Shown here: positions 1,800 to 54,687 of the stretch, piece by piece
Layout: each line of letters opens with the position of its first letter
Numbering within the stretch: the first letter of the stretch is position 1
Virus record (IMG/VR): IMGVR_UViG_3300029983_000007
Span: 62,001-126,000 of that record
Direction: 5' to 3' (one strand)
Length of the DNA stretch: 64,000 bases
Made by a program: the position numbers and the translations under genes
Notes under the pieces: model-generated
Seen by the model: only the letters and a program-made list of their open reading frames with translations
The model's database searches: none
Told to the model about the DNA's origin: nothing

Positions 1800-2390
1800 T
1801 TACAATAAATGTGGTCTTGCTTCAGCAATTCCAGCATTTGTTACTTGATACCATTTTGGATTGTATTCAGATAGATTGTTAGCTCCTCCATAAGATAATG
1901 CTGAACGAACTCCATAAATTAATCCTTCTATTACAAATCTTACTCCACCTTTGAATGGTATAGTTGTTGACTCTCCTTCTACATTTCTCTCAGCTTGACC
2001 ATGAACAGTTTTAGTTTCCAATGATGCAGAGCCTCTATAGCGTTTATATAAACCATTAGGACTCTCTATAACCTTACCTGGTGATTCTTCTGTTCCTGCT
2101 AATAGAGAACCTAACATGATTGTTGATGATCCTAATGCAAGAGCTTTAGAAATATCTCCACTTGATCTAATTCCACCATCAGCCATAACTGGTACTGTTG
2201 CTACATTTAAAATTTCTATTAAACTTGTCACATTTGGAACACCAAATCCTGTCTTAATCCTTGTTGTACAAAGAGAATTATGAACAACAATACCATTTAT
2301 ATTATACGAATGTGTTTTTTCTACTGTTAAATCATAAACTTTGCCTGTATAATTCTTTTTCTCAATGCTTTTTATTTCTACTAATTTCAT
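1800..2390 (-). CDS. Split intein C-half fused to C-terminal extein of GuaB/GuaC-family (IMPDH/GMP reductase) enzyme
   Basis: VYDLTVEKTHSYNINGIVVHN|SLCTTRIKTGFG; then ADGGI, KALALG, MLGSLLAGTEESPG, YRGSAS. Confidence 0.92.
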   Translation of the reverse strand: MKLVEIKSIEKKNYTGKVYDLTVEKTHSYNINGIVVHNSLCTTRIKTGFGVPNVTSLIEILNVATVPVMADGGIRSSGDISKALALGSSTIMLGSLLAGTEESPGKVIESPNGLYKRYRGSASLETKTVHGQAERNVEGESTTIPFKGGVRFVIEGLIYGVRSALSYGGANNLSEYNPKWYQVTNAGIAEARPHLL

Positions 2391-2512
2391 ATTATATCTT
2401 TTAATTTTTTAATAAAACTTCCATCATTTATCTCATTCTCCCAAATTCTAATTAATTTAAAATTGTGTTCTAATGCAAATTTATTTTTCTTTATATCTTT
2501 TTCAAATTTCAA
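2387..2512 (-). pseudogene. Internally deleted Vsr-like homing endonuclease relic between intein halves
   Basis: 41-aa frame LKFEKDIKKNKFALEHNFKLIRIWENEINDGSFIKKLKDII; overlaps IntN stop and IntC ATG. Confidence 0.7.
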
Positions 2513-3371
2513 CTAAAAAATATTTATCAGTTAAATTTCCTGCTGGTATCCATTCAGCATACTCTTCAATATTTGATGAGTTAACTAAACCTTTATATTT
2601 TATATTTACAACATAAAATTCATGATTTTTTGTGCATTCTATGCCATTTATAATAATAATTTCCTCATTTCTATCAAACTCTAATTTATTTAATACTTTA
2701 TTGAGTTCTCCATTATGACTATAAACTTCATCTCCAATTTTTACATCAATTATATCAATATATCCTTCTGAAGTTTTAACTTTCATGCTAGGTGTAAAAC
2801 AGCCTCCACCAATACCACATCTTAGTCCATCAGCTCCCCAATTTTGTAAATCAATAGCTGCTTCTGATGTAGCAATATTACCTGCAATTATATCCACTCC
2901 TAAATCTAATCCTTTAATTGCTTCGATTGCTTTTTTTACATTTATGTGATGACCATGTGCAACATCAATAAGAATAACATTTACTCCTGCTTCAATTAAT
3001 GATTTGGATCTTTCTAAAAAATCTCCGTTTGAACCTACTGCTGCCATTACTGGAATTTTGTGCCTTATTTTATCTTGATTGAAAGGATCATATGAACTAT
3101 TCTCAATACTTGTAATTAATTTTTTAATTTCATTTGCCTGTTCTTCAATAGACATAAATCTATGAATACATCCTACTCCTCCTAATTGAAACATTTTAAA
3201 TGCCATTTCATGTTCACAAACTGTGTCCATGGGTGATGCTACTAATGGTATCATCAACTCAAAATTTGTCGATAATTTTGTTCTTAAACTAATTTTATTT
3301 CTATGTTTAACTTCACTGTAAAATGGTATGAGTTGAATATCATCATACGTTAACGCTATGTTATTTGTCAT
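2502..3371 (-). CDS. N-terminal extein of GuaB/GuaC-family enzyme fused to split intein N-half
   Basis: LTYDDI, SPMDTV, GGVGCIHR, IDVAHGH, AGNIAT, GIGGG|CFTPSMKV...CTKNHEFYV. Confidence 0.92.
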   Translation of the reverse strand: MTNNIALTYDDIQLIPFYSEVKHRNKISLRTKLSTNFELMIPLVASPMDTVCEHEMAFKMFQLGGVGCIHRFMSIEEQANEIKKLITSIENSSYDPFNQDKIRHKIPVMAAVGSNGDFLERSKSLIEAGVNVILIDVAHGHHINVKKAIEAIKGLDLGVDIIAGNIATSEAAIDLQNWGADGLRCGIGGGCFTPSMKVKTSEGYIDIIDVKIGDEVYSHNGELNKVLNKLEFDRNEEIIIINGIECTKNHEFYVVNIKYKGLVNSSNIEEYAEWIPAGNLTDKYFLVEI

Positions 3372-3390
3372 TCTTTATTTTATTTGTTTT

Positions 3391-3846
3391 TTATTTGTTT
3401 TTTGGTAGTAATAATAACTTTAGATATCTACTATTCAAATCAACACTATTGTTCATGTGTGATAATAATATTGGATGTAATTTATAACTTAAATCTGAAT
3501 CAGATATTACATCAAAGTCACCAATGAATTTTTTAAAGTTTTTCATTACACTTTTACTATCACGTATGTCAGAATTTAATATGAAATTTAGAATATTTAG
3601 AATTTCATATTCATCATTATCAATTTTCCACATTTTACAATATTCTGACCAAAAATCAGCACTATAATCTATTCTTTGTGACCTATATTTATTTTTAACT
3701 TCACTTATAAATTCATTTTTACCCAATTTATTAAAAAAAGATGTAGTCTTTTCTATTAAATAATCAGGTGATGTAGTTATAATTTTATTATCATTTAACA
3801 TAATTCCAAGATAATAAAATACATTATATGCTTGATTTTTAGTCAT
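3391..3846 (-). CDS. hypothetical protein
   Basis: 151 aa ORF in operon-like run. Confidence 0.6.
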   Translation of the reverse strand: MTKNQAYNVFYYLGIMLNDNKIITTSPDYLIEKTTSFFNKLGKNEFISEVKNKYRSQRIDYSADFWSEYCKMWKIDNDEYEILNILNFILNSDIRDSKSVMKNFKKFIGDFDVISDSDLSYKLHPILLSHMNNSVDLNSRYLKLLLLPKNK

Positions 3847-7355: not shown

Positions 7356-7654
7356 TTTTCTAAATCTTTTTTAGAAATATATTCAATAACGTCTTTTGAT
7401 TTTTTAATTTCAGAAATAACCAATGAATATAATGAATCTTTAATTATTATTTTGTCATCATTTGAAGAACTTTCTAATATTGCTAATAGATTACTCATAG
7501 GACTTAATTTATTTCTAACATTAGCAAGTTCTTCAATTTGATATTTTTCAATCTCTTTAAGAAGGTCTTGCTTATCATTCCAACTTGATGCTGGTTGTTG
7601 CTCGGAATCAAATTTCCAAAAACTATTTACTAAATTTAAAATTTTGCTTTTCAT
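7352..7654 (-). CDS. hypothetical protein
   Basis: 4-nt overlaps on both sides. Confidence 0.6.
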   Translation of the reverse strand: MKSKILNLVNSFWKFDSEQQPASSWNDKQDLLKEIEKYQIEELANVRNKLSPMSNLLAILESSSNDDKIIIKDSLYSLVISEIKKSKDVIEYISKKDLEK

Positions 7655-7902
7655 AACATTTTCAATTTTTCCAATTTTTCTAATCTTAATATTTTAATTT
7701 TGTAAGTTTTCATTTTATTCAAGAATAAATCTTCATTAGTGAAATCACCTAAGAAAATATCATATCCACCGTAATATAATTTATAATTAGTAAAATATCT
7801 CATTTCTACTTCACGTACCATAAATTTGTGAGTATAACCATACCAAGTACGATCTTCAATATCATATCTAAAATTATTTAATATTAGGGTAGCTTCTGTC
7901 AT
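7651..7902 (-). CDS. RxxKL-tail small protein
   Basis: ends ILRLEKLEKLKML. Confidence 0.65.
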   Translation of the reverse strand: MTEATLILNNFRYDIEDRTWYGYTHKFMVREVEMRYFTNYKLYYGGYDIFLGDFTNEDLFLNKMKTYKIKILRLEKLEKLKML

Positions 7903-9951: not shown

Positions 9952-11031
9952 TTAAATTTTATATAGAGGACAATCACGATTACAACGAATAAGGTTATTT
10001 CTAAAATTAATAGTCTTTTCGTTATTCCAAATATCATCAATAAAATTACCACATTTTAAAACATTTAGTCCTTCTTTCCAATTTTCTGTATTTGGAGTAA
10101 ATGAGCAAGGAAAATAATTTCCTTTGACATCAATATAGCTACTATAACAACTTGACTCACATGGCTCTACACATTGCTTCATTTTGTTTCTGTATTCATC
10201 TGATAATGAGTTATCTGATTCCAAATATTTTAGAAATTTGTGACTACTGCAACTATCAAATCCTATACTTATTTTTTCATCTAATGCAAATTTGCAAAGT
10301 TCATTAAACTTATCCTGTGGTAAAGGGTGAAATCTATTTTCTGCTCTACCTTTAGTTTTTAAACTTAGTAAAACTAATGCGTTAAGATTTTTTAATCTTT
10401 CATCATTTTTACAATCTTTAATTACTTGCATTGTATAGTCAAAATTTTCCAAGCAAATCATATCGTGAATGTTTACTTGTGTCATTCCTCTATCAGTTAA
10501 TTCTTTTATTGCGTTGTAACTATTGTCTTTATTATAAGATGTACCAACTGATACAGCAACTGCTCCCATTGTTTTTGATAATCTATCATACAATTCTGAT
10601 GTCATTCGTGATCCATTTATTGTTACATTAGGAACAACATCTTGAGAGCGAGTATAATCAAAAATATCCCACATATCTGGATTTGAATCAATGTCTGTTA
10701 TTCCAAATGCTACCTGAGTTACAGTTAAAGGAAGCTTAGAAAAAATGTTTTTATATGTGTCTAATGACATATATTCACCATCTTTATTGTTGCTCTTGTA
10801 GCAAAATGAACAGTTTTGTTTACACGCTGTGTCAATTTCAATATCAGCAATTTCAGGTAATCCTATTTCTAAATCACCATCATCATCTTCTGTTTTACCC
10901 CATCTGGCAAAAAACCCTGTTTTTTTGTTAAATAAGAAATTGTAGTTTTCTGATTTTAAAATTTTAACATCTTTATTATCTACAATTAGTGCTTCTTCAC
11001 CGTTTGAAAGTTTTAATTTAGTTTGTTTCAT
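9952..11031 (-). CDS. Radical SAM enzyme with SPASM/twitch-like C-terminal domain
   Basis: CKQNCSFC (CX3CX2C); C-terminal CES...YIDVKGNYFPCSF...CNRDCP. Confidence 0.9.
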   Translation of the reverse strand: MKQTKLKLSNGEEALIVDNKDVKILKSENYNFLFNKKTGFFARWGKTEDDDGDLEIGLPEIADIEIDTACKQNCSFCYKSNNKDGEYMSLDTYKNIFSKLPLTVTQVAFGITDIDSNPDMWDIFDYTRSQDVVPNVTINGSRMTSELYDRLSKTMGAVAVSVGTSYNKDNSYNAIKELTDRGMTQVNIHDMICLENFDYTMQVIKDCKNDERLKNLNALVLLSLKTKGRAENRFHPLPQDKFNELCKFALDEKISIGFDSCSSHKFLKYLESDNSLSDEYRNKMKQCVEPCESSCYSSYIDVKGNYFPCSFTPNTENWKEGLNVLKCGNFIDDIWNNEKTINFRNNLIRCNRDCPLYKI

Positions 11032-11285
11032 ATTTTGTTTAATTTGTTTAATTTGTCTCTTCTTTCAGATTTTAATGATGATTCAAATAATTCAATATAA
11101 TATAATGTATAGGGTTGTTCTGATATTCCTATACGCAAAATGTCTTTGTTAATAGATGAATATTGTAGTCCATCTACAGTGTAATTTTTATCAAAACTCA
11201 AATCTGATGGTATTCCAATTTGCTCAAATATGTTTGTTGGTTTTTTGAGTATAACTTTATCACCAATTTTCAAGTTTGTTATCAT
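11028..11285 (-). CDS. KIGD-type small protein with RxxKL tail
   Basis: LKIGDKVILK ... ERRDKLNKLNKI. Confidence 0.7.
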   Translation of the reverse strand: MITNLKIGDKVILKKPTNIFEQIGIPSDLSFDKNYTVDGLQYSSINKDILRIGISEQPYTLYYIELFESSLKSERRDKLNKLNKI

Positions 11286-14221: not shown

Positions 14222-14689
14222 ATGAGAAAAATTATAATAAGCATAATAATTATGCTATTGACTTTTAGTGCTTATACTAATGCACAAAATGAACAAAAAA
14301 AATTCATAAATAAATTTGATGAATTATCTATATCACTAAGTAATGAATTTAAAATACCAGTCAGCGTAATACTTGCTATTTCATTGTGGGAAAGTGGTTC
14401 TGGTACAAGTAGATTAAGTAGAACTAAACATAACTATTTTGGAGTAAAACAAGGAAAAAATTATAAACGTTATGATAATGATTCTGTATCATTTAGACAT
14501 TTTTGTGAATTCATTTCAAAAAGAAAATATTATAAAAAATTAACATCTAACAATGTAACTGATTATCATATATGGGTACTCAATATCAAAAGAGGAGGAT
14601 ATTCAGAAACAAAAACATGGGACAAACATGTTATCTCTATGATTGAAATATATAATTTAACTATGATTGATGATAAATCTGAAGAATAA
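14222..14689 (+). CDS. Secreted GH73 glucosaminidase/muramidase (peptidoglycan hydrolase)
   Basis: Signal peptide; IPVSVILAISLWESGSG, HNYFGVK, GYSE. Confidence 0.85.
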   Translation: MRKIIISIIIMLLTFSAYTNAQNEQKKFINKFDELSISLSNEFKIPVSVILAISLWESGSGTSRLSRTKHNYFGVKQGKNYKRYDNDSVSFRHFCEFISKRKYYKKLTSNNVTDYHIWVLNIKRGGYSETKTWDKHVISMIEIYNLTMIDDKSEE

Positions 14690-14690
14690 T

Positions 14691-14846
14691 TTATAGATTA
14701 TTTAATCTATTTAACTTTTCAGTTCTATCATTTTTTAATTTCTTTCTTTCTTCTTCTCTATCAAATATCATTTTAAATGTATAGTTATAAAATGCAGGAT
14801 TTGCTACTAAGTCGTAGCTGAAAAGTTTACTTGATTTTATTTCCAA
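14691..14846 (-). CDS. Small protein: prohead-protease-like peptide fused to RxxKL tail
   Basis: Manual translation LEIKSSKLFSYDLVANPAFYNYTFKMIFDREEERKKLKNDRTEKLNRLNNL (TTG start). Confidence 0.55.
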   Translation of the reverse strand: MEIKSSKLFSYDLVANPAFYNYTFKMIFDREEERKKLKNDRTEKLNRLNNL

Positions 14847-15138
14847 TTTGCTTCAATTTCTTTTTTCTTAGATGCTTAACATATTCATTAGGAAAGTTAT
14901 CATAGTCCAATACAGGCTTGTTTGAAGCTTCCTTTATGACATCTAATTGCCATTGTATTGACTCAACTGGATCATCACATTCACTTTCATAAGATATTAT
15001 AGTAATTGGATTTTCAGTACAAGCTTCAGGTAAGTCCGTTTCATCGTTATAATATACTTCATAAATACTAAAATGAACATCAGAGTATAAATCTGTTGTT
15101 ATTCTTTTTGCTAAAATTCTATAATTCCAATGTGTCAT
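14827..15138 (-). CDS. hypothetical protein with RxxKL tail
   Basis: WNYRI...IYEVYY; ends HLRKKKLKQI. Confidence 0.7.
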   Translation of the reverse strand: MTHWNYRILAKRITTDLYSDVHFSIYEVYYNDETDLPEACTENPITIISYESECDDPVESIQWQLDVIKEASNKPVLDYDNFPNEYVKHLRKKKLKQIGNKIK

Positions 15139-15172
15139 AATAATTATATATCTATAAGATAAAATAGTTTAT

Positions 15173-15206
15173 AAAAAAAGTCAGAATAATTATTCTGACT
15201 TTTTTT
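15173..15206. terminator. Bidirectional intrinsic terminator
   Basis: A-tract GTCAGAATAATTATTCTGAC T-tract; same core at 20815-20848. Confidence 0.8.
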
Positions 15207-15215
15207 ATTGTTGTG

Positions 15216-15429: not shown

Positions 15430-15723
15430 TTATTGAATTGAATTTAATTTGTTTAATTTATTTTTTCTTGATAAATTTTTGATAGCATTATCAATTAGGT
15501 TATCTGTAATTTCTTTTTTATAATATCTGAAATTATAAGAAGACTTCATTATTTCTAATTGATGTTCATTTGCATTCATTAATTTATTTAAAATACCCTC
15601 TTCTAATTCTTTATAGAATAGCATTTGACCTACCACTTGAATATCCTTATATTTTAATGTGAGTTCTGAAATTAATTCTAAGTTATCACAACTTTTTTTT
15701 AATTGTTCAATTAATTCCTCCAT
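15430..15723 (-). CDS. RxxKL-tail small protein
   Basis: ends LSRKNKLNKLNSIQ. Confidence 0.65.
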   Translation of the reverse strand: MEELIEQLKKSCDNLELISELTLKYKDIQVVGQMLFYKELEEGILNKLMNANEHQLEIMKSSYNFRYYKKEITDNLIDNAIKNLSRKNKLNKLNSIQ

Positions 15724-20867: not shown

Positions 20868-22742
20868 TTATTTTATTTCCTCAAAATCCACGTCTGTTAC
20901 ATTTTCAGAATCATCTTTTTTGTCAGATGAATTGCTTTCATTCGTTGACTGATTTTTTGATTCTTCATAAAGTTTACCACTAATGTTTTGCCAAACATCA
21001 TTAAGTTCTTTGGTGTATTTATCAATATTATCAACATTTTGAGTTTTGTGAGCTTCTTTAAGATTATCAAGTTTAGAATTCAATTCAGTTTTGTTTTCTT
21101 CATTCAATTTATCACCAAATTCTTCAATTTGTTTTTCAGTTTGAAAAATCATTGAGTCAGCTTGATTCAACTTATCAACTTTTTCTTTTTCTTTCTTATC
21201 AGCATCAGAATTTTGTTCAGCTTCCATTTTCATTCTTTCAATCTCTTCTTTTGTTAGAGATGAATTACCTTCAATCCTAATGTCATTCTTTTTTCCTGTT
21301 GCTTTATCAACTGCAGTAACTGTCAAAATATTATTTGCATCAATTGAAAACGAAATTTCTATTTGCGGTACTCCTCGTCTGGCTGGCATAATTCCATCTA
21401 AATTAAAAGTTCCCAACATTTTATTATCCTTAAACATACTTCTATTTCCAGTTGAAACATTAATCTGAACACCAGGCTGATTGTCAGTGGCTGTACTGAA
21501 TATTTGTGTCTTAGTTGTAGGAATTGTTGTATTAGCCTCTACCATGACACTGGCTACACCGCCCATACTCTCCAGTGAGAAGTTTAAAGCTGTAACATCG
21601 AGTAATAAGATGTCAGTTGTATCACCAGCAAGAACAGATGCTTGTATAGCTGCACCTGATGCAATTGCAGTATCAGGATTAAGTGACTTATTCGCTTTCT
21701 TACCAAAATATTTTTCAATACTTTCTGACAAATATGGAATTCTAGTGCTACCTCCAACAAGTACAATTTCGTCAATATCTGAAACTTTCTTACCACTTTT
21801 ATTCATTGATGATTGAATCAATGATATTGTTTTATCAACATAGAATTGAATCAATTGTTCAAATTTAGATCTTGTTAATTTTTGAACCAAATGTTTAGGT
21901 TGTCCATCTACAGCAGTGATGTATGGTAAATTTATTTCTGTTTGTGTAGTATTAGACAATTCTATTTTTGCTTTTTCTGATGCTTCTGTAACACGTTGTA
22001 GAGCCATTGGATCTTTACGAATATCAACGCCTGTTTCTTTTAAAAATTCATCAGATATAAAATTCACAAGTGCGTCATCAATTAAATTACCACCTAAATC
22101 TAAATCACCATCAGTTCCAATAACTTCAAATAATCCGTCCTCTATATCTAAAACTGAAAAATCACTTGTACACCCACCACTATCAACTATCATATAAAGT
22201 TTACCAGTTTTATCTTTAATATTTAATGATGCTGCTGTTGGTTCAGATATAATTCTATCAACAGTAAATCCTGCTATTTCACCTGCAACTTTTGTACTGC
22301 TTCTTTCATCTGAATTGAAATATGCTGGAGTTGTTATGACCGCATTGGTTACATTTGTTCCAAGGTAATCTTCTGCTGTTTTTTTCATTTTTTGAAGGAT
22401 CATTGCAGAAATTTCTTCTGGTGAATATATTCTTTCACCAATTTTTACACCAGCCTTACCATTATTATCAACTATATCATAAGGACGTTTAAGATGTTTA
22501 ACTTCCTCATAAGTTCTACCAATAAGTCTTTTGATATTAAAAATTGTGTTTTTTGGATTTAATGCTGCTTGTCTTTTTGCAGATTCACCAACTTTAATTT
22601 CTCCTGTTTTTTCATCAAATGATACAATTGAAGGAGTTGATAGCGATCCTTCTGAATTAGGTATGACAATTGTTTGTCCACCTTCTACTATAGATACGGC
22701 TGAATTGTATGAACCTAAATCTATTCCAATAATTTTTCCCAT
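20868..22742 (-). CDS. dnaK: Hsp70 chaperone DnaK
   Basis: IIGIDLG, TPAYF, LVGGSTRIP, GVPQIEISF, C-terminal DVDFEEIK. Confidence 0.97.
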   Translation of the reverse strand: MGKIIGIDLGSYNSAVSIVEGGQTIVIPNSEGSLSTPSIVSFDEKTGEIKVGESAKRQAALNPKNTIFNIKRLIGRTYEEVKHLKRPYDIVDNNGKAGVKIGERIYSPEEISAMILQKMKKTAEDYLGTNVTNAVITTPAYFNSDERSSTKVAGEIAGFTVDRIISEPTAASLNIKDKTGKLYMIVDSGGCTSDFSVLDIEDGLFEVIGTDGDLDLGGNLIDDALVNFISDEFLKETGVDIRKDPMALQRVTEASEKAKIELSNTTQTEINLPYITAVDGQPKHLVQKLTRSKFEQLIQFYVDKTISLIQSSMNKSGKKVSDIDEIVLVGGSTRIPYLSESIEKYFGKKANKSLNPDTAIASGAAIQASVLAGDTTDILLLDVTALNFSLESMGGVASVMVEANTTIPTTKTQIFSTATDNQPGVQINVSTGNRSMFKDNKMLGTFNLDGIMPARRGVPQIEISFSIDANNILTVTAVDKATGKKNDIRIEGNSSLTKEEIERMKMEAEQNSDADKKEKEKVDKLNQADSMIFQTEKQIEEFGDKLNEENKTELNSKLDNLKEAHKTQNVDNIDKYTKELNDVWQNISGKLYEESKNQSTNESNSSDKKDDSENVTDVDFEEIK

Positions 22743-26195: not shown

Positions 26196-26226
26196 CAAAT
26201 GTACTACATTTATTTTGATTGACAAA
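26196..26226 (-). promoter_or_regulatory. Bacteroidota-type promoter for rtcB
   Basis: TTTG-N19-TACATTTG. Confidence 0.7.
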
Positions 26227-26467
26227 ATATTTCATTCAATTTATTTATTTTATTTATTTTATTCATTCTTAAAACTCTTTTACTAATGAAAAATGATCCA
26301 TAACTTATATAACATATAACTCCAGCATCTGTCATTATTGATATAGCTCCAAGCATTATTTCTAATACTTTATAATCTTTGCCTACTGAAATAAGGTGAT
26401 CATTTGTGTTATCAATTTTGATGCAAGTAACAATTTCACCAATTTTATATTTATTTATTTTTTTCAT
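26210..26467 (-). CDS. KIG-type RxxK-tail protein
   Basis: YKIGEIVTCI...VLRMNKINKI. Confidence 0.65.
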   Translation of the reverse strand: MKKINKYKIGEIVTCIKIDNTNDHLISVGKDYKVLEIMLGAISIMTDAGVICYISYGSFFISKRVLRMNKINKINKLNEIFCQSK

Positions 26468-26789
26468 TTATTTTATTAAGTTTCAATGTTCTATATTCTT
26501 TTACCCCAATGAATCTTTTCATATCAAAAACAGTATGTCCATGTATCTTTTCAACTTCATCTAATATATATGATGTGTTTTCATATGTACTACTGGTATT
26601 ATCAATTTTGTCTCCACAATTTCCATCATCTCCCCAATATGTATGAATTTCTTTAATTGTATAATATTTATACTTTTCTAATGGATTTATTTTATGATAT
26701 TCTAAAATACAAGAAGAATAATCATAAAATATTTCCTTTGAGTAAGGTTTATCATCAATACAAACCATAATATCACCTACTTTGTACAT
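26451..26789 (-). CDS. KVGD-type RxxKL-tail protein
   Basis: MYKVGDIMVCIDD...KEYRTLKLNKI. Confidence 0.7.
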   Translation of the reverse strand: MYKVGDIMVCIDDKPYSKEIFYDYSSCILEYHKINPLEKYKYYTIKEIHTYWGDDGNCGDKIDNTSSTYENTSYILDEVEKIHGHTVFDMKRFIGVKEYRTLKLNKINEKNK

Positions 26790-27017
26790 ATCTTATTAAG
26801 TTTTTCTAATTTCATTTTTCTATAATAAGAAGTTTTAATAAAATATGATGATTTAAACCATAATACAATATTTCTTGTTTCAATACGAATGTAGATTGAA
26901 TAAAAAAGATGATTTGTTGATTTTATTTTATATCTTTCTCATTTTTTTTAGATATTCACGAGAAAGGTAATCTCCATCATCATTAATAAAAGTAACAGAA
27001 TCACCTACTTTGAACAT
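26777..27017 (-). pseudogene. Disrupted KVGD-type RxxKL-tail gene
   Basis: MFKVGDSVTFINDD...; break at A8 run near 26942-26949; resumes to YYRKMKLEKLNKICTK. Confidence 0.65.
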
Positions 27018-27274
27018 ATTTTATTGAGTTTTTCTAATTTCATTTTTCTAATTGATTGATCATCTGTGAAAAATTCTATCGGTATAAATTGGGAAAATCT
27101 TTTTGTGTCAGTTTTTATACAAATTTTATTAAAAAAATGATAATCTAAATCATTGATTTTATATTTTTTGCCTATTGTTAAATGTTGTTCCCAGTAATCA
27201 TCATTGTCATATTTTACGCAAGTAACAACTTGTCCAATTTTAAAATCTTGATAAGTCAATTCTTTATTTTGCAT
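27005..27274 (-). CDS. KIG-type RxxKL-tail protein
   Basis: FKIGQVVTCV...SIRKMKLEKLNKICSK. Confidence 0.7.
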   Translation of the reverse strand: MQNKELTYQDFKIGQVVTCVKYDNDDYWEQHLTIGKKYKINDLDYHFFNKICIKTDTKRFSQFIPIEFFTDDQSIRKMKLEKLNKICSK

Positions 27275-27543
27275 AATTTATTGAGTTTTATTTTTCTTAA
27301 AATTGAAATCAATTCTCTTTCAGTTATAAAATGATTACTTATTGATTGTCTGCATATATTTCCATTGATATTAGATTTAATAATTATTCCATATTTTGAA
27401 TTATTATTGTTATAACTTATTGAAAGTATATCTACATCATGTGAAATATTTAAATTAAATTTTTTGTTATAATATTGTCTTAATTCTCTTAATAAGAGTA
27501 AATATGATTTAATGTCTAAGTTTGAAACTATATTGTCTGACAT
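27256..27543 (-). CDS. RxxKL-tail protein
   Basis: ends ILRKIKLNKLCKIKN. Confidence 0.6.
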   Translation of the reverse strand: MSDNIVSNLDIKSYLLLLRELRQYYNKKFNLNISHDVDILSISYNNNNSKYGIIIKSNINGNICRQSISNHFITERELISILRKIKLNKLCKIKN

Positions 27544-27866
27544 AATTTTACAAGTTTTTGTTTTCTCAAAAAAATATTATGTTCTTTATCATCAACAAAT
27601 TGATATAGCACATCACCTATAACTTCATGATTAGAATACATAAGTGTATATATTTTGTGTTCAAACCTAATAGAAAAAGATGTTTCGCATGAATAGAAAA
27701 TTTCAAACCTTCTATTGTATCTTTCATTAAGTAATGTTATTGCAGCAGACCTAATTATTTCTTTTCTTTCATCTTTTGTAATAAAATTATCCATTTGATA
27801 ACAATTACGAGGCATACCCCATAATCCATTATCTTGTTTTTTTGATTTTATTGGTATTATATCCAT
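27528..27866 (-). CDS. RxxKL-tail protein
   Basis: ends FLRKQKLVKLCQTI. Confidence 0.65.
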   Translation of the reverse strand: MDIIPIKSKKQDNGLWGMPRNCYQMDNFITKDERKEIIRSAAITLLNERYNRRFEIFYSCETSFSIRFEHKIYTLMYSNHEVIGDVLYQFVDDKEHNIFLRKQKLVKLCQTI

Positions 27867-27876
27867 GATAATTTAA

Positions 27877-28383
27877 TTATAATTTGCCTAAACTATTCAG
27901 TTCATTATTCAGTTTAGATCCAAGCAGTTCCAAATTTTTCAGTTGATTTTTTACTTGATTTATACTATCATTAAAATCTTCTTTGATATTATTATTAAAT
28001 TCTTCTATATCATCTTTATTTATTAACTCATCTAATTTTTTATACAATTCTTCACGTTCCATATTGTTTGCATTATAATCAAATTCATCATTTTCAGTAT
28101 CTTTTTCATATTGAGATTCATTTTCAGATATCTTTTTGTTTACAGATAGTATATCATCTTTTGTTTTATTAGATAATTCTTTAAATTTGAAAGTATATTC
28201 TTCAGTTATAAGAGGACACCATTTTGGTTTATATTCATTCTCATCTAACTCGATATAATGTTCATTTAATTTTAAATAATTTGATAATACGCATATATTT
28301 GTGTCTGGATTTACTGTTGCATCATAGTCATATTCTGTGTGACAAAAAGGGCAATTCAAGCAACCATTTACTGTTTTTTTCAT
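27877..28383 (-). CDS. Cys-rich N-domain plus coiled-coil protein
   Basis: CLNCPFC...C...PKWCPL. Confidence 0.65.
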   Translation of the reverse strand: MKKTVNGCLNCPFCHTEYDYDATVNPDTNICVLSNYLKLNEHYIELDENEYKPKWCPLITEEYTFKFKELSNKTKDDILSVNKKISENESQYEKDTENDEFDYNANNMEREELYKKLDELINKDDIEEFNNNIKEDFNDSINQVKNQLKNLELLGSKLNNELNSLGKL

Positions 28384-28550
28384 TTTAAGTTATTTATTTT
28401 TTCTATCTTTTTCTTTCTTTCTATTTTTGTTATTTTTCTTTTTAGTTCAGCAGCTAATTTTTCATCTATATCAAAAGATTCTGGATATAAACTTGCATAA
28501 TCAAAATTAGATATACTATATAAATCTTCAAATTTCAGATTCTTCTTCAC
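28380..28550 (-). CDS. Small protein: PolB motif-A-like peptide fused to RxxKI tail
   Basis: Manual translation (GTG) MKKNLKFEDLYSISNFDYASLYPESFDIDEKLAAELKRKITKIERKKKIEKINNLK; ATGA-coupled to next gene. Confidence 0.6.
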   Translation of the reverse strand: MKKNLKFEDLYSISNFDYASLYPESFDIDEKLAAELKRKITKIERKKKIEKINNLK

Positions 28551-29187
28551 TACAATTTATTTTATTTAATTTTATTTTTCTATTGAATTTTATCAATAGT
28601 TCAGTATCCTTATATCTTAATATAGACAATTCAAATCCGTTATTATTATAATGATTTTCTAATTTAGATATAAATAATTCAAAATTTTCAGATAGAACTC
28701 CATTTTTTTCAAATATTTTTGGCTTGTTATTTTTATTTTCATATATTCCTCTAATTAGAACCTTATTTATACGTGTTGAAAAATTTATATAATCTTGGTC
28801 ATTGCATAATTTCCAATTTTGATTTAATATTAATTTTTTAATTTTTTTATATTGTTCATCTATGATACCCCAATAGTGATATTCATTTTCACTGTCAGCT
28901 CCTTTGTTATAGCTACTTATAAATATTACATATGGAGTATCTTTATATAAAGTTTTGAATAATTCATATTTAGATTTGCAATCTAAATCAAACACTGGAT
29001 AAATAACATTTTTAAATTTTGACTCAATTAAAACTTCACAATATCTATCAATATTAATCATAGTTCTGAAGTATTTCATTATACTACCAATAGATTTATA
29101 TTTTAGTTTTGATGTTGTATCATAACTTCCATAATGTGTTGTTTGATGTAGATATATTAATTCATTTTTATTTTTAAATAAAATCAT
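28528..29187 (-). CDS. hypothetical protein, possible AEP primase-like fold, RxxKL tail
   Basis: VFDLD, SS...HYW, D.DY; ends FNRKIKLNKI. Confidence 0.55.
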   Translation of the reverse strand: MILFKNKNELIYLHQTTHYGSYDTTSKLKYKSIGSIMKYFRTMINIDRYCEVLIESKFKNVIYPVFDLDCKSKYELFKTLYKDTPYVIFISSYNKGADSENEYHYWGIIDEQYKKIKKLILNQNWKLCNDQDYINFSTRINKVLIRGIYENKNNKPKIFEKNGVLSENFELFISKLENHYNNNGFELSILRYKDTELLIKFNRKIKLNKINCSEEESEI

Positions 29188-30152: not shown

Positions 30153-30410
30153 ATGAAATATCATGTCGGTGATAACGTTGTGTTCATAAATAATTCCAAA
30201 AATGCTTACGATTGGAACATAACTGAGTATAAAATCTATAAAATTTATGGATATTCAATTCATAAATCTCAAATTGTATATTCTGTCAAATTTGGAACAA
30301 CTATTCAAAGTTGGTACAGTGAATGTGACTTCATGTCATTAAAAGAATATAGAAAATTGAAAATAGAAAAAATAAATAAACTAAAAAATGGGTATATTGG
30401 AGATAGATAG
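30153..30410 (+). CDS. VGD-type RxxKI-tail protein
   Basis: YHVGDNVVFI...FMSLKEYRKLKIEKI. Confidence 0.65.
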   Translation: MKYHVGDNVVFINNSKNAYDWNITEYKIYKIYGYSIHKSQIVYSVKFGTTIQSWYSECDFMSLKEYRKLKIEKINKLKNGYIGDR

Positions 30411-48311: not shown

Positions 48312-48464
48312 ATGAAAAACAAATCAAAAATTTCGATATCATTAAAAAATGAATTGATAGATTATTTAAATGACTTGAGTTTAAATAAATCTAAATTTAT
48401 AGAAAAATTAATAGAAGAGTATAAAATAATAAAAATAAATAATGATAATAACAAAAAAAGTTAA
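48312..48464 (+). CDS. Small ribbon-helix-helix protein upstream of endonuclease
   Basis: MKNKSKISISLKNELIDYLNDLSLNKSKFIEKLIEEY; below track cut-off. Confidence 0.7.
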   Translation: MKNKSKISISLKNELIDYLNDLSLNKSKFIEKLIEEYKIIKINNDNNKKS

Positions 48465-49431
48465 AATTCATATTAAAGGAATATCAATAAAAAGATATAA
48501 AAAATTAGGTTATAATGTTGATACTAAAGGATTAAATACTATTAATGTTGAAGATCTTCCTAAATGTAGTAATATTAAAGTCATGGTGAAATGTGATAAT
48601 TGTGATTATGAAAAAGAATTAAAGATTCAAGATTATTATTTATCTTTTAAAAATAATAAATATTGTTGTAATAAATGCTCATATGAAAATTATAAAAAAA
48701 CAATGTTAGAAAGATATGGAGTTGAAAATGGATTTCAATATAAAGACATAAAAGAAAAATCTAATAGCACTAAAATAAAATTATATGGAGATGAAAATTA
48801 CAATAATAGAGAAAAAGCGATAGAAACATGTTTAGATAAATATGGTGTTGAAAATCCTAATCAAAATTATAAAATAAAAAAAAAATCTAATAATACTTGC
48901 TTAGAAAAATATGGATTTGAAACAGCATCTAAAAATGAAAAAGTAAAGGAAAAAATAAAAAAAACAAATTTGAAAAGATGGAACAGTACATGTACATTAC
49001 ATTCAGAAAAACAAATTGATAAAATTAAACAAATATTTATTGATAAATATGGAGTTGATAATCCTATGAAGAATTTAGAAATATTTTTAAAAGCCCAAAA
49101 AACAGCTCTAAATCGTAAAAAATTTAAAGAAACTGAATTATTATATCAAGGTACATATGAATTAGATTTTTTAAATAATTATTATGAAAAAATTAATATT
49201 GAAAATGGTAAATCAATAAAAATAATTTATAATAATAATAAAACTGTGTATCATTCTGATTTTTTTTTATCTGAAAAAAATTTAATTATAGAAATAAAAT
49301 CATCATATTGGTATAATAGATATTATGATAAAAATATAATTAAACAAAAAGAATGTGAAAAATTAGGATATAATTATATCATAATAATAGATAAAAATTA
49401 TAATGATTTTAATAAATTAATAATGATTTAA
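48442..49431 (+). CDS. Putative homing endonuclease: Zn-finger, KYGVEN repeats, PD-(D/E)XK nuclease
   Basis: CDNC/CNKC; several (K/R)YGV(E/D)N repeats; YHSDFFL...IIEIKS. Confidence 0.75.
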   Translation: MIITKKVKIHIKGISIKRYKKLGYNVDTKGLNTINVEDLPKCSNIKVMVKCDNCDYEKELKIQDYYLSFKNNKYCCNKCSYENYKKTMLERYGVENGFQYKDIKEKSNSTKIKLYGDENYNNREKAIETCLDKYGVENPNQNYKIKKKSNNTCLEKYGFETASKNEKVKEKIKKTNLKRWNSTCTLHSEKQIDKIKQIFIDKYGVDNPMKNLEIFLKAQKTALNRKKFKETELLYQGTYELDFLNNYYEKINIENGKSIKIIYNNNKTVYHSDFFLSEKNLIIEIKSSYWYNRYYDKNIIKQKECEKLGYNYIIIIDKNYNDFNKLIMI

Positions 49432-49470: not shown

Positions 49471-50952
49471 TTATATATTTGTTTCTTCTAATTTTTTTAA
49501 TTCATCTTTTAACTTTTCAAGTTCTTCGTGTTTTTGATTCATTACTTTCTTCCATTTTTTTCTATCAGAATAAACTTCTCCCATTACTTGAGTAACAACA
49601 CCATCTTCATTCTTAAATACTGATCCATTGAGAGTTACAATATCATCAGGTTCAATTGTTAATTGATGTCCATTAAATAATGAGTAATCTTTACCTTTTA
49701 CTTTTTGTCCTTTATATGAGTCTGCTGATATGTTAAATTCTCTCATTGTGGTAGGATACAGGGATGCGAAGTCAAAACAACAAGTCCATGTTGCCATTCC
49801 TCTCACTGGATCTTTAACCCATCCACCTTTAATAGATTCAGATTCAGAATCACTATATTCACTATCTTCATTTCTTACAAGTACAATATTCTTTTGATCT
49901 CTTAATTTTTCTCTTAAAATTCCTTCTGTCAGTGCAAGTGTTGAAATTGCATCTTTAATTTTAATTTTACCTAATACAGCCATACCATAAAGAATATCTA
50001 CATATTTCATTTTAACGTGAATTCTTTGTACCAGACAACTATCTACAGCATTATAAAAAACGAATTTCTTAAAATCTTCTCTATGTAATCTTTTTAAATC
50101 TCCATCATAGTTAATTTTCTTGACTTCTTTACCAAGAATTTTTTCTGATGCAAAATCAAGAGATAAACTTTCTTTAACTTTAACAGATTGATCCCATTTC
50201 TTAAATAATTCCATATAATCCACTATAACTCTATGAGCTGGTAATTCAGCATAATCTAAATGTATTGCATTAGGAGGATTGAATGGTTTGTTAAGTTTCT
50301 TTGTGAAAGATGCTACTTCAGGTTCTAGTCCTAATTTTCTTGCCCTTGCAACTAAGAATGTCCAGTCATATGCAATAAAATTCCAGCCAGTCATTACTGG
50401 CATTTTTGGAACTAATTTATTGAAAAATGCATGAAGCATATCAAATTCAGTTTTATAATGAACATATTTAAATTTATAATCAGTATCAAATTTTTTGAAG
50501 TGAGTATTTAAATCTGATTCAATGTTTTCAATTTGTTTTGAATCCAGTGATTCTGTTCCAATTACTAACACTTTATTCTTATTTACAATTGATATTGTTT
50601 GAATCGCACTTTCTGCTAAATGAGGTTCAGGTTTTTTATCTAATATTTCATTTTCAATATCGACAAAGAATATATCTGGTTCATTATAACTATATATTTC
50701 ATTTTTTTCATCTTCATCAAAACTATCAATAAAATCATAAATAGAATATCTATTAGGATATTTTGTGAATATTTCTTTTACAGCACTACCATCCCATGTA
50801 ACATATCTACCAGATTTTTCTGAATCATCATCAGTAGTTTTTATGAATTTTGTACATCTTGCCCAAGGTTTATATTTTAATTTTATTTGACCTGATTTAT
50901 CTATGTAACTTATTATAAGGTTATTATTTCTGTATTCTGTGTCTATAAGCAT
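49471..50952 (-). CDS. Family B DNA polymerase, N-terminal subunit (exonuclease plus motif A) of a split gene
   Basis: FVDIE, TGWNFIAYD, YNAVDS, GGWV, FDFASLYP; ends in the fingers helix; no KxxxNSxYG or DTDS. Confidence 0.88.
   Translation of the reverse strand: MLIDTEYRNNNLIISYIDKSGQIKLKYKPWARCTKFIKTTDDDSEKSGRYVTWDGSAVKEIFTKYPNRYSIYDFIDSFDEDEKNEIYSYNEPDIFFVDIENEILDKKPEPHLAESAIQTISIVNKNKVLVIGTESLDSKQIENIESDLNTHFKKFDTDYKFKYVHYKTEFDMLHAFFNKLVPKMPVMTGWNFIAYDWTFLVARARKLGLEPEVASFTKKLNKPFNPPNAIHLDYAELPAHRVIVDYMELFKKWDQSVKVKESLSLDFASEKILGKEVKKINYDGDLKRLHREDFKKFVFYNAVDSCLVQRIHVKMKYVDILYGMAVLGKIKIKDAISTLALTEGILREKLRDQKNIVLVRNEDSEYSDSESESIKGGWVKDPVRGMATWTCCFDFASLYPTTMREFNISADSYKGQKVKGKDYSLFNGHQLTIEPDDIVTLNGSVFKNEDGVVTQVMGEVYSDRKKWKKVMNQKHEELEKLKDELKKLEETNI

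Positions 50953-51111: not shown

Positions 51112-54687
<3,576 letters not shown>

Follow-up and report, generated by a model that had tools for sequence, protein, structure and literature searches.

A conserved 51-codon gene of a huge phage combining a head-maturation protease-derived segment with a predicted C-terminal helix shared by many of its genes

Genomic context and organisation of the locus

The window analysed in this study is a stretch of 64,000 nucleotides corresponding to the positions 62001-126000 of a linear IMG/VR virus record of 330,208 bp (IMGVR_UViG_3300029983_000007), rated as 46% complete by CheckV. The G+C content is about 24%. The standard bacterial code fits this record, since ORFs of at least 100 codons cover 87% of the sequence and the reading through of TAG or TGA adds little. 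The gene content points to a huge tailed phage, with a T4-type split topoisomerase II, a Cas3-like HD-helicase, HSP70, PhoH, a collagen-like protein and glycosyltransferases. The presence of HSP70, collagen, ankyrin and PolB could suggest a giant eukaryotic virus, but this was rejected considering the split topoisomerase II, Cas3 and the absence of an NCLDV capsid in the record. The Cas3-like protein (HD, DEAD and Cas3 C-terminal domains) and a 361-aa unknown ORF upstream (L008:14291-16564, genome 199291-201564, and L008:10238-11323, L008 being a segment of the record) may represent a phage-borne CRISPR-Cas remnant. The collagen-repeat protein of 1191 aa (window 51112-54687, minus strand) is found in the only stretch with a raised G+C content (0.33). 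The locus studied here is composed of the following features (coordinates of the window):

14691-14846, minus strand: ORF51, a 51-codon gene including the TAA stop (14691-14693)
14844-14846, minus strand: TTG start codon of ORF51, inside the last codons of the upstream gene
14769-14843, minus strand: residues 2-26 of ORF51 (EIKSSKLFSYDLVANPAFYNYTFKM), homologous to the last beta-strand region of gp21/S77-S80 prohead proteases
14694-14759, minus strand: residues 30-51 of ORF51, a predicted C-terminal helix whose last 11 residues (RTEKLNRLNNL, 14694-14726) are the clade-wide tail
14827-15138, minus strand: upstream gene ORF103 (phrog_21321 family), with its own tail (R91-I98, 14845-14868)
15171-15208, no strand assigned: strong 17-bp hairpin with T runs on both sides, just upstream of ORF103
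14222-14689, plus strand: convergent glucosaminidase-domain gene (PF01832, E 1e-21), ending 1 nt before the ORF51 stop

ORF51 overlaps by 20 nt the 3' end of ORF103, a gene of 103 aa that also ends in a tail (HLRKKKLKQIGNKIK), and the two genes are probably translationally coupled. The hairpin (2 terminator-like sites found against 0.2 expected) probably separates the ORF103-ORF51 pair from the preceding genes, and no same-strand gene follows ORF51. A full-length HSP70/DnaK homologue (window 20868-22742, minus strand; E 5e-200) is localized about 6 kb from ORF51 and is again near the mini-gene in a distant relative (contig L032, positions 1867-3759). The original prediction described ORF51 as unannotated, which is only partly true: JGI gene calls in the public collection already list this 51-aa product on 13 contigs, the longest being of 711,471 bp. 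All the runs that hold this DNA are peat or lake metagenomes.

Conservation of the reading frame

The open frame of ORF51 comprises 53 codons from stop to stop, a length that is not remarkable by itself at 24% GC. To determine if it is a real gene, IMG/VR was searched with the ORF103 protein, and loci were found at 100, 82, 76, 42 and 34% identity. In the 82% and 76% relatives, the ORF51 frame is open over the same span, with 75% and 61% amino acid identity, respectively. Many differences are synonymous or conservative (for example TAC>TAT, GAC>GAT, CCT>CCA and TTA>CTT). The Nei-Gojobori dN/dS values are of 0.27-0.40 overall and of 0.20-0.33 for the part that overlaps nothing, with dS reaching about 1, whereas all five other frames contain several stops in every lineage. 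Contigs from four further metagenome runs show substitutions but no insertions or deletions. The contig L032, in which the upstream protein is only 54% identical, keeps the arrangement composed of a tail-bearing upstream gene, a TTG start with a 20-nt overlap and a convergent gene, but its product is of 74 aa. The three nucleotides of the TTG (T55, T56 and G57) are invariant in the DNA alignment and this start, which was considered as uncertain in the original prediction, is conserved in four lineages. In contrast, the homologues of ORF103 at 34-42% identity, found in higher-GC phages, end just before the tail and have no ORF51. We conclude that ORF51 is a real gene.

The possibility that ORF51 is a +1 frameshift extension of ORF103 was considered, because its frame opens only 26 nt before the ORF103 stop and because an A-AAA-AAG run and an AAAA run lie nearby. 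However, no conserved slip site was detected in either the +1 or -1 direction. The A-AAA-AAG site is followed by a stop in the frame it would shift into, and the AAAA run is not conserved in the related loci L017 or L021, while the TTG is conserved. In another locus (L031), a family member overlaps its upstream gene by 14 nt, which fits coupling rather than one fixed slip site, and ORF103 already ends in its own tail. This explanation is thus very unlikely.

Relationship to the head-maturation proteases

The direct scans of the 51-aa peptide against Pfam, PHROGs and PDB detected nothing. A single-sequence hit to a contractile-injection-system protein (7b5h, E 0.25) vanished with the profile, tblastn hits in Lak phages at E=9 lie outside any ORF and are due to chance, and the search of paralogues in the same genome gave nothing significant apart from the tails. 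An exhaustive HMMER search with the profile of four orthologues revealed 28 small proteins of 42-86 aa at E<=1e-3 among 1.8 billion representatives. Thirteen of them are long forms of about 75 aa, displaying the layout M-x(2-8)-(G)-I-S-S-R-x-x-G-x-V, then G-x-V-x-V-x-K-L-L-S-Y-D-I-V-x-x-P-G-F-x-x-A, then a charged helix and finally R-R-E-K-I-N-R-L-N-N-L. When scanned one by one, 12 of these 13 long forms hit phrog_207 ("head maturation protease") at the profile positions 136-195, with a best E-value of 2.7e-5.

A tblastn search with a long form hit a 735-kb uncultured phage (LR756501.1) and T4-like gp21 genes. In the 735-kb phage, the match is included in an 807-aa ORF directly after a portal-like gene, and the family of this protease-scaffold protein (1,597 proteins) carries precomputed Peptidase_S80 (PF20034) and S77 (PF03420) domains. 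Using hhalign, the profile of ORF51 and its orthologues was aligned over 25 columns, residues 2-26 of ORF51 corresponding to residues 144-168 of this protein (probability 94.9%, E 4.7e-8). The long forms were aligned to residues 129-169 of the gp21-like protease of the Campylobacter phage CPt10, annotated with PF03420 (probability 96.1%, E 2.9e-9). In addition, tblastn of eight protease domains against the genome gave 55-69% identity over 13-18 aa in the ORF51 segment. All of about 200 protease-scaffold proteins that were read share the motif KKLFTYD[AIL]VADPGF. In the orthologues of ORF51, Tyr11, Asp12, Val14 and Pro17 are invariant; in 26 family members, Asp and Pro are invariant, and Tyr, Asp, Val, Pro and Phe are invariant or nearly so. 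The Asp would be the catalytic one in the proteases (PMC7411985).

The original prediction, which proposed a fragment of a gp21-type prohead protease followed by an RxxKL tail, is thus supported for this segment, by comparison with proteases of other phages. Indeed, no full-length protease was found with PF03420, PF04586 and phrog_207 in the 330-kb record nor in five related records, and no portal or protease-scaffold protein was found in the record by tblastn. Pattern scans of IMG/VR returned many protease-scaffold genes but none could be assigned to this phage. An apparent synteny of head loci with the record turned out to be due to a multi-copy DUF7487-type gene. This family has at least seven copies (window 48442-49431, plus strand, and 49471-50952, minus strand; genome 22-25.9 kb, 32-34 kb, 150-152 kb, 170-171.5 kb and 211.8-212.4 kb), one of which lies beside a 493-aa ORF that holds only parts of a family-B DNA polymerase; copies also flank head genes in other huge phages, and it is probably a mobile gene. 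The alternative that the protease likeness is a chance motif in a spurious AT-rich ORF could be based on the empty single-sequence searches and on the fact that the pattern L..[YV]D.V..P[SGA] was fitted to the ORF after the fact, although it occurs once in all six frames of the record against about 0.01 expected. This alternative is refuted by the profile-profile alignments, the phrog_207 hits and the purifying selection.

ORF51 does not reach the curated Pfam cut-off for PF03420, PF20034 or PF04586, and neither do its orthologues; only one of 26 relatives hits PF20034, at E 0.043. The catalytic His motif (G-E-x-x-H-P region) is absent, as the ORF begins after this region, and no His-motif fragment was found anywhere in the 330 kb. 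The catalytic Ser motif (G-[IV]-S-S-R-x-x-G) is absent from ORF51 and its three close orthologues, and is present but not strictly conserved in the long forms (for example GIASR and GISAR). The product of ORF51 is therefore not a protease but a protease-derived mini-protein. AF2 models the long form as a beta-hairpin (9-19, 25-37) followed by a long helix (48-73) with pLDDT of 80-93, and Foldseek found no match to this model below E 1. ORF51 keeps only the second strand and the helix, predicted from residue 30 to 50 with a pLDDT of about 80, the model being weak before residue 30. It represents the N-terminally shortened orthologue of the family of about 75 aa.

This shortening (about 23 residues lost compared to the 74-aa orthologue, including the Ser-motif strand), the non-ATG start and the absence of a direct family hit could indicate a decaying remnant of a duplicated protease-scaffold gene, kept open by chance. 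We consider this highly unlikely regarding the dN/dS values, the conservation of the frame, start and stop region in lineages down to 54% neighbour identity, the conserved residues in 26 members and the absence of indels in population variants.

A second protease fragment is encoded by a 53-aa ORF at genome position 239071-239232 (plus strand), flanked by two further tailed ORFs. It is composed of the N-terminal N-x-N-G-R-I-Y-P strand/helix of the same protease family and of a tail. It matches PF03420 positions 51-77 (E 0.07), phrog_207 positions 51-77 (E 0.0025) and the CPt10 protease with 56% identity over 23 residues, and its first 27-32 residues match 169 viral loci. No other fragment was found in the record.

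The C-terminal tail

ORF51 ends with DRTEKLNRLNNL, with 3 residues after the motif [RK]-x-x-[KR]-[LIMV]-x-[KREQN]-[LIMV], which is the commonest layout; this motif is usually followed by N and ends 0-8 residues before the stop. In a six-frame scan, R/K-x-x-K-[LIM]-x-x-[LIM] is found within 8 residues of a stop in about 80 of 108 hits. A looser form gives 83 hits in the last 18 residues of ORFs and 18 hits in all internal residues, an enrichment of about 23-fold per residue. In a crude gene set, 81 of 592 genes are tailed (about 14%), such as those at window positions 7651-7902 (minus), 11028-11285 (minus), 15430-15723 (minus), 26210-29187 (minus) and 30153-30410 (plus). The 85-aa tailed ORF at 11028-11285 overlaps by 4 nt a radical SAM/SPASM enzyme gene (9952-11031, minus strand), being directly upstream of it. 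The Lys and Arg of the tail are invariant or nearly invariant in 26 members of the ORF51 family.

The Leu and Ile residues of the tails are encoded by TTA, TTG, CTN and ATH, indicating that the peptide is conserved and not a DNA word; a promoter or repeat at the DNA level was rejected on this basis. After removal of the tail, the 83 proteins fall into 65 BLAST clusters. One cluster is a tandem array of about 15 overlapping paralogues of 80-101 aa (L008:5969-9836, genome 190969-194836), with the consensus G-D-K-L-L-C-K-K ... Y-F-Y-T-x-x-E-x-R-K-x-K-L-x-K-L. Each next start codon lies inside the previous tail, and the family has 64 metagenomic homologues and no Pfam or PHROG family. As the distant homologues of ORF103 lack the tail, it behaves as an added module.

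Concerning the role of the tail, 58% of tailed genes overlap the start of the next same-strand gene, against 27% of untailed genes, and downstream ATG or TTG codons sit inside tail codons. Part of the prevalence of the tail may therefore reflect translation-initiation constraints. It is possible, though we consider it unlikely, that the tail is not a capsid address but a general oligomerisation or hub-binding helix, or partly a by-product of the A-rich translation-initiation region of the next gene. ORF51 would then act elsewhere, for example as a dominant-negative regulator of the protease or as a decoy for a host sensor of the protease, as phage proteases are sensed by a defence system (PMC12991175). 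The heptad-like spacing L5/L8/L12 fits a coiled coil, and the tailed genes cluster in arrays of small genes typical of early or host-interaction regions. Moreover, a profile of 81 tails does not pick out the C-termini of 119 protease-scaffold proteins, the best hits being internal with scores below 0. These fusions of huge phages (570-830 aa) end in a few recurrent short basic amphipathic motifs (ERFKNL, FDKLNS, LKRLQR, KFRLGR, NRINNL) that may be their capsid-binding ends, but the visual likeness of endings such as NRINNL or ERFKNL to NRLNNL is unproven. On the other hand, the codons vary synonymously and conservatively at the Leu/Ile positions, 26 of 81 tails, including that of ORF51, have no adjacent downstream start, tails occur at operon ends and before convergent genes, and two protease fragments carrying the same tail are hard to explain without a head-related link.

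Possible function and comparison with known systems

The function of ORF51 is only inferred. With moderate confidence and in the absence of expression or virion data (no RNA run was listed), we propose that it acts as a small structural or adaptor protein of the prohead core. The protease-derived strand would dock by strand addition onto the protease-scaffold core, and the C-terminal helix would be a docking or targeting element of the kind that proteases and scaffolds use to enter procapsids. The same tail on about 14% of the ORFs would then mark a large set of small proteins for one common partner, most plausibly the procapsid interior. Scaffold C-termini contact the N-arm of the capsid protein (PMC12749128), and T4 loads core and injected proteins through a short targeting peptide, its core holding hundreds of copies of small proteins (PMC9958956). 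One relative (P0086, 245 aa) has the strand at the N-terminus of an unrelated body, as expected for a docking element. However, ORF51 is localized among small unknown genes and not in a head module, the head module being absent from the 330-kb record. More speculatively, and rather unlikely at this stage, the tail could be a C-terminal capsid-targeting signal inherited from the protease-scaffold protein, through which this phage of roughly 700 kb would load on the order of a hundred different small proteins into its head for delivery to the host, including fast-diversifying tandem families and protease-derived adaptor mini-proteins such as ORF51.

Little is known about how the largest phages build and fill their heads. 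The conserved mini-protein shows that pieces of the assembly machinery have been reused as separate small genes. If the tail is an address label for the procapsid, it would name the candidate injected proteins of a megaphage and give a portable tag for loading cargo; if not, it still defines a large, unexplained class of small proteins with one common partner.

Compared with the T4 gp21-type prohead proteases (S77, PF03420; phiKZ/SPN3US type S80, PF20034), here the protease-scaffold fusions of huge phages, ORF51 shares almost letter for letter the strand K-L-F-(S/T)-Y-D-x-V-x-x-P-x-F, and its long-form relatives also share the Ser-motif strand. It differs by its length (51 aa against a domain of at least 170 aa), by the absence of the His motif, the Ser motif and the scaffold coil, and by its localization outside any head module. 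The capsid-targeting peptides, such as the T4 N-terminal CTS, the C-terminal signals of the HK97 and SPN3US proteases and the encapsulin cargo-loading peptides, are also short terminal peptides shared by unrelated proteins. The protease C-terminus serves as a packaging signal in SPN3US (PMC7411985) and probably in HK97 (Duda et al. 2013). Here the putative signal is C-terminal and is present on about 81 ORFs, without demonstrated packaging. The nested or shortened scaffold products of protease genes (lambda C/Nu3, P2 gpO) and the small T4 core proteins gp67/gp68 (PMC9958956) would be small proteins related to, or encoded with, the protease-scaffold gene that share its C-terminal end and enter the prohead core; contrary to the nested products, ORF51 is a separate gene at a distant locus and not an in-frame internal start. 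Finally, residues 1-80 of ORF103 match the phrog_21321 family (E 2e-9), of which only the members in this low-GC clade carry the added tail and the downstream mini-gene.
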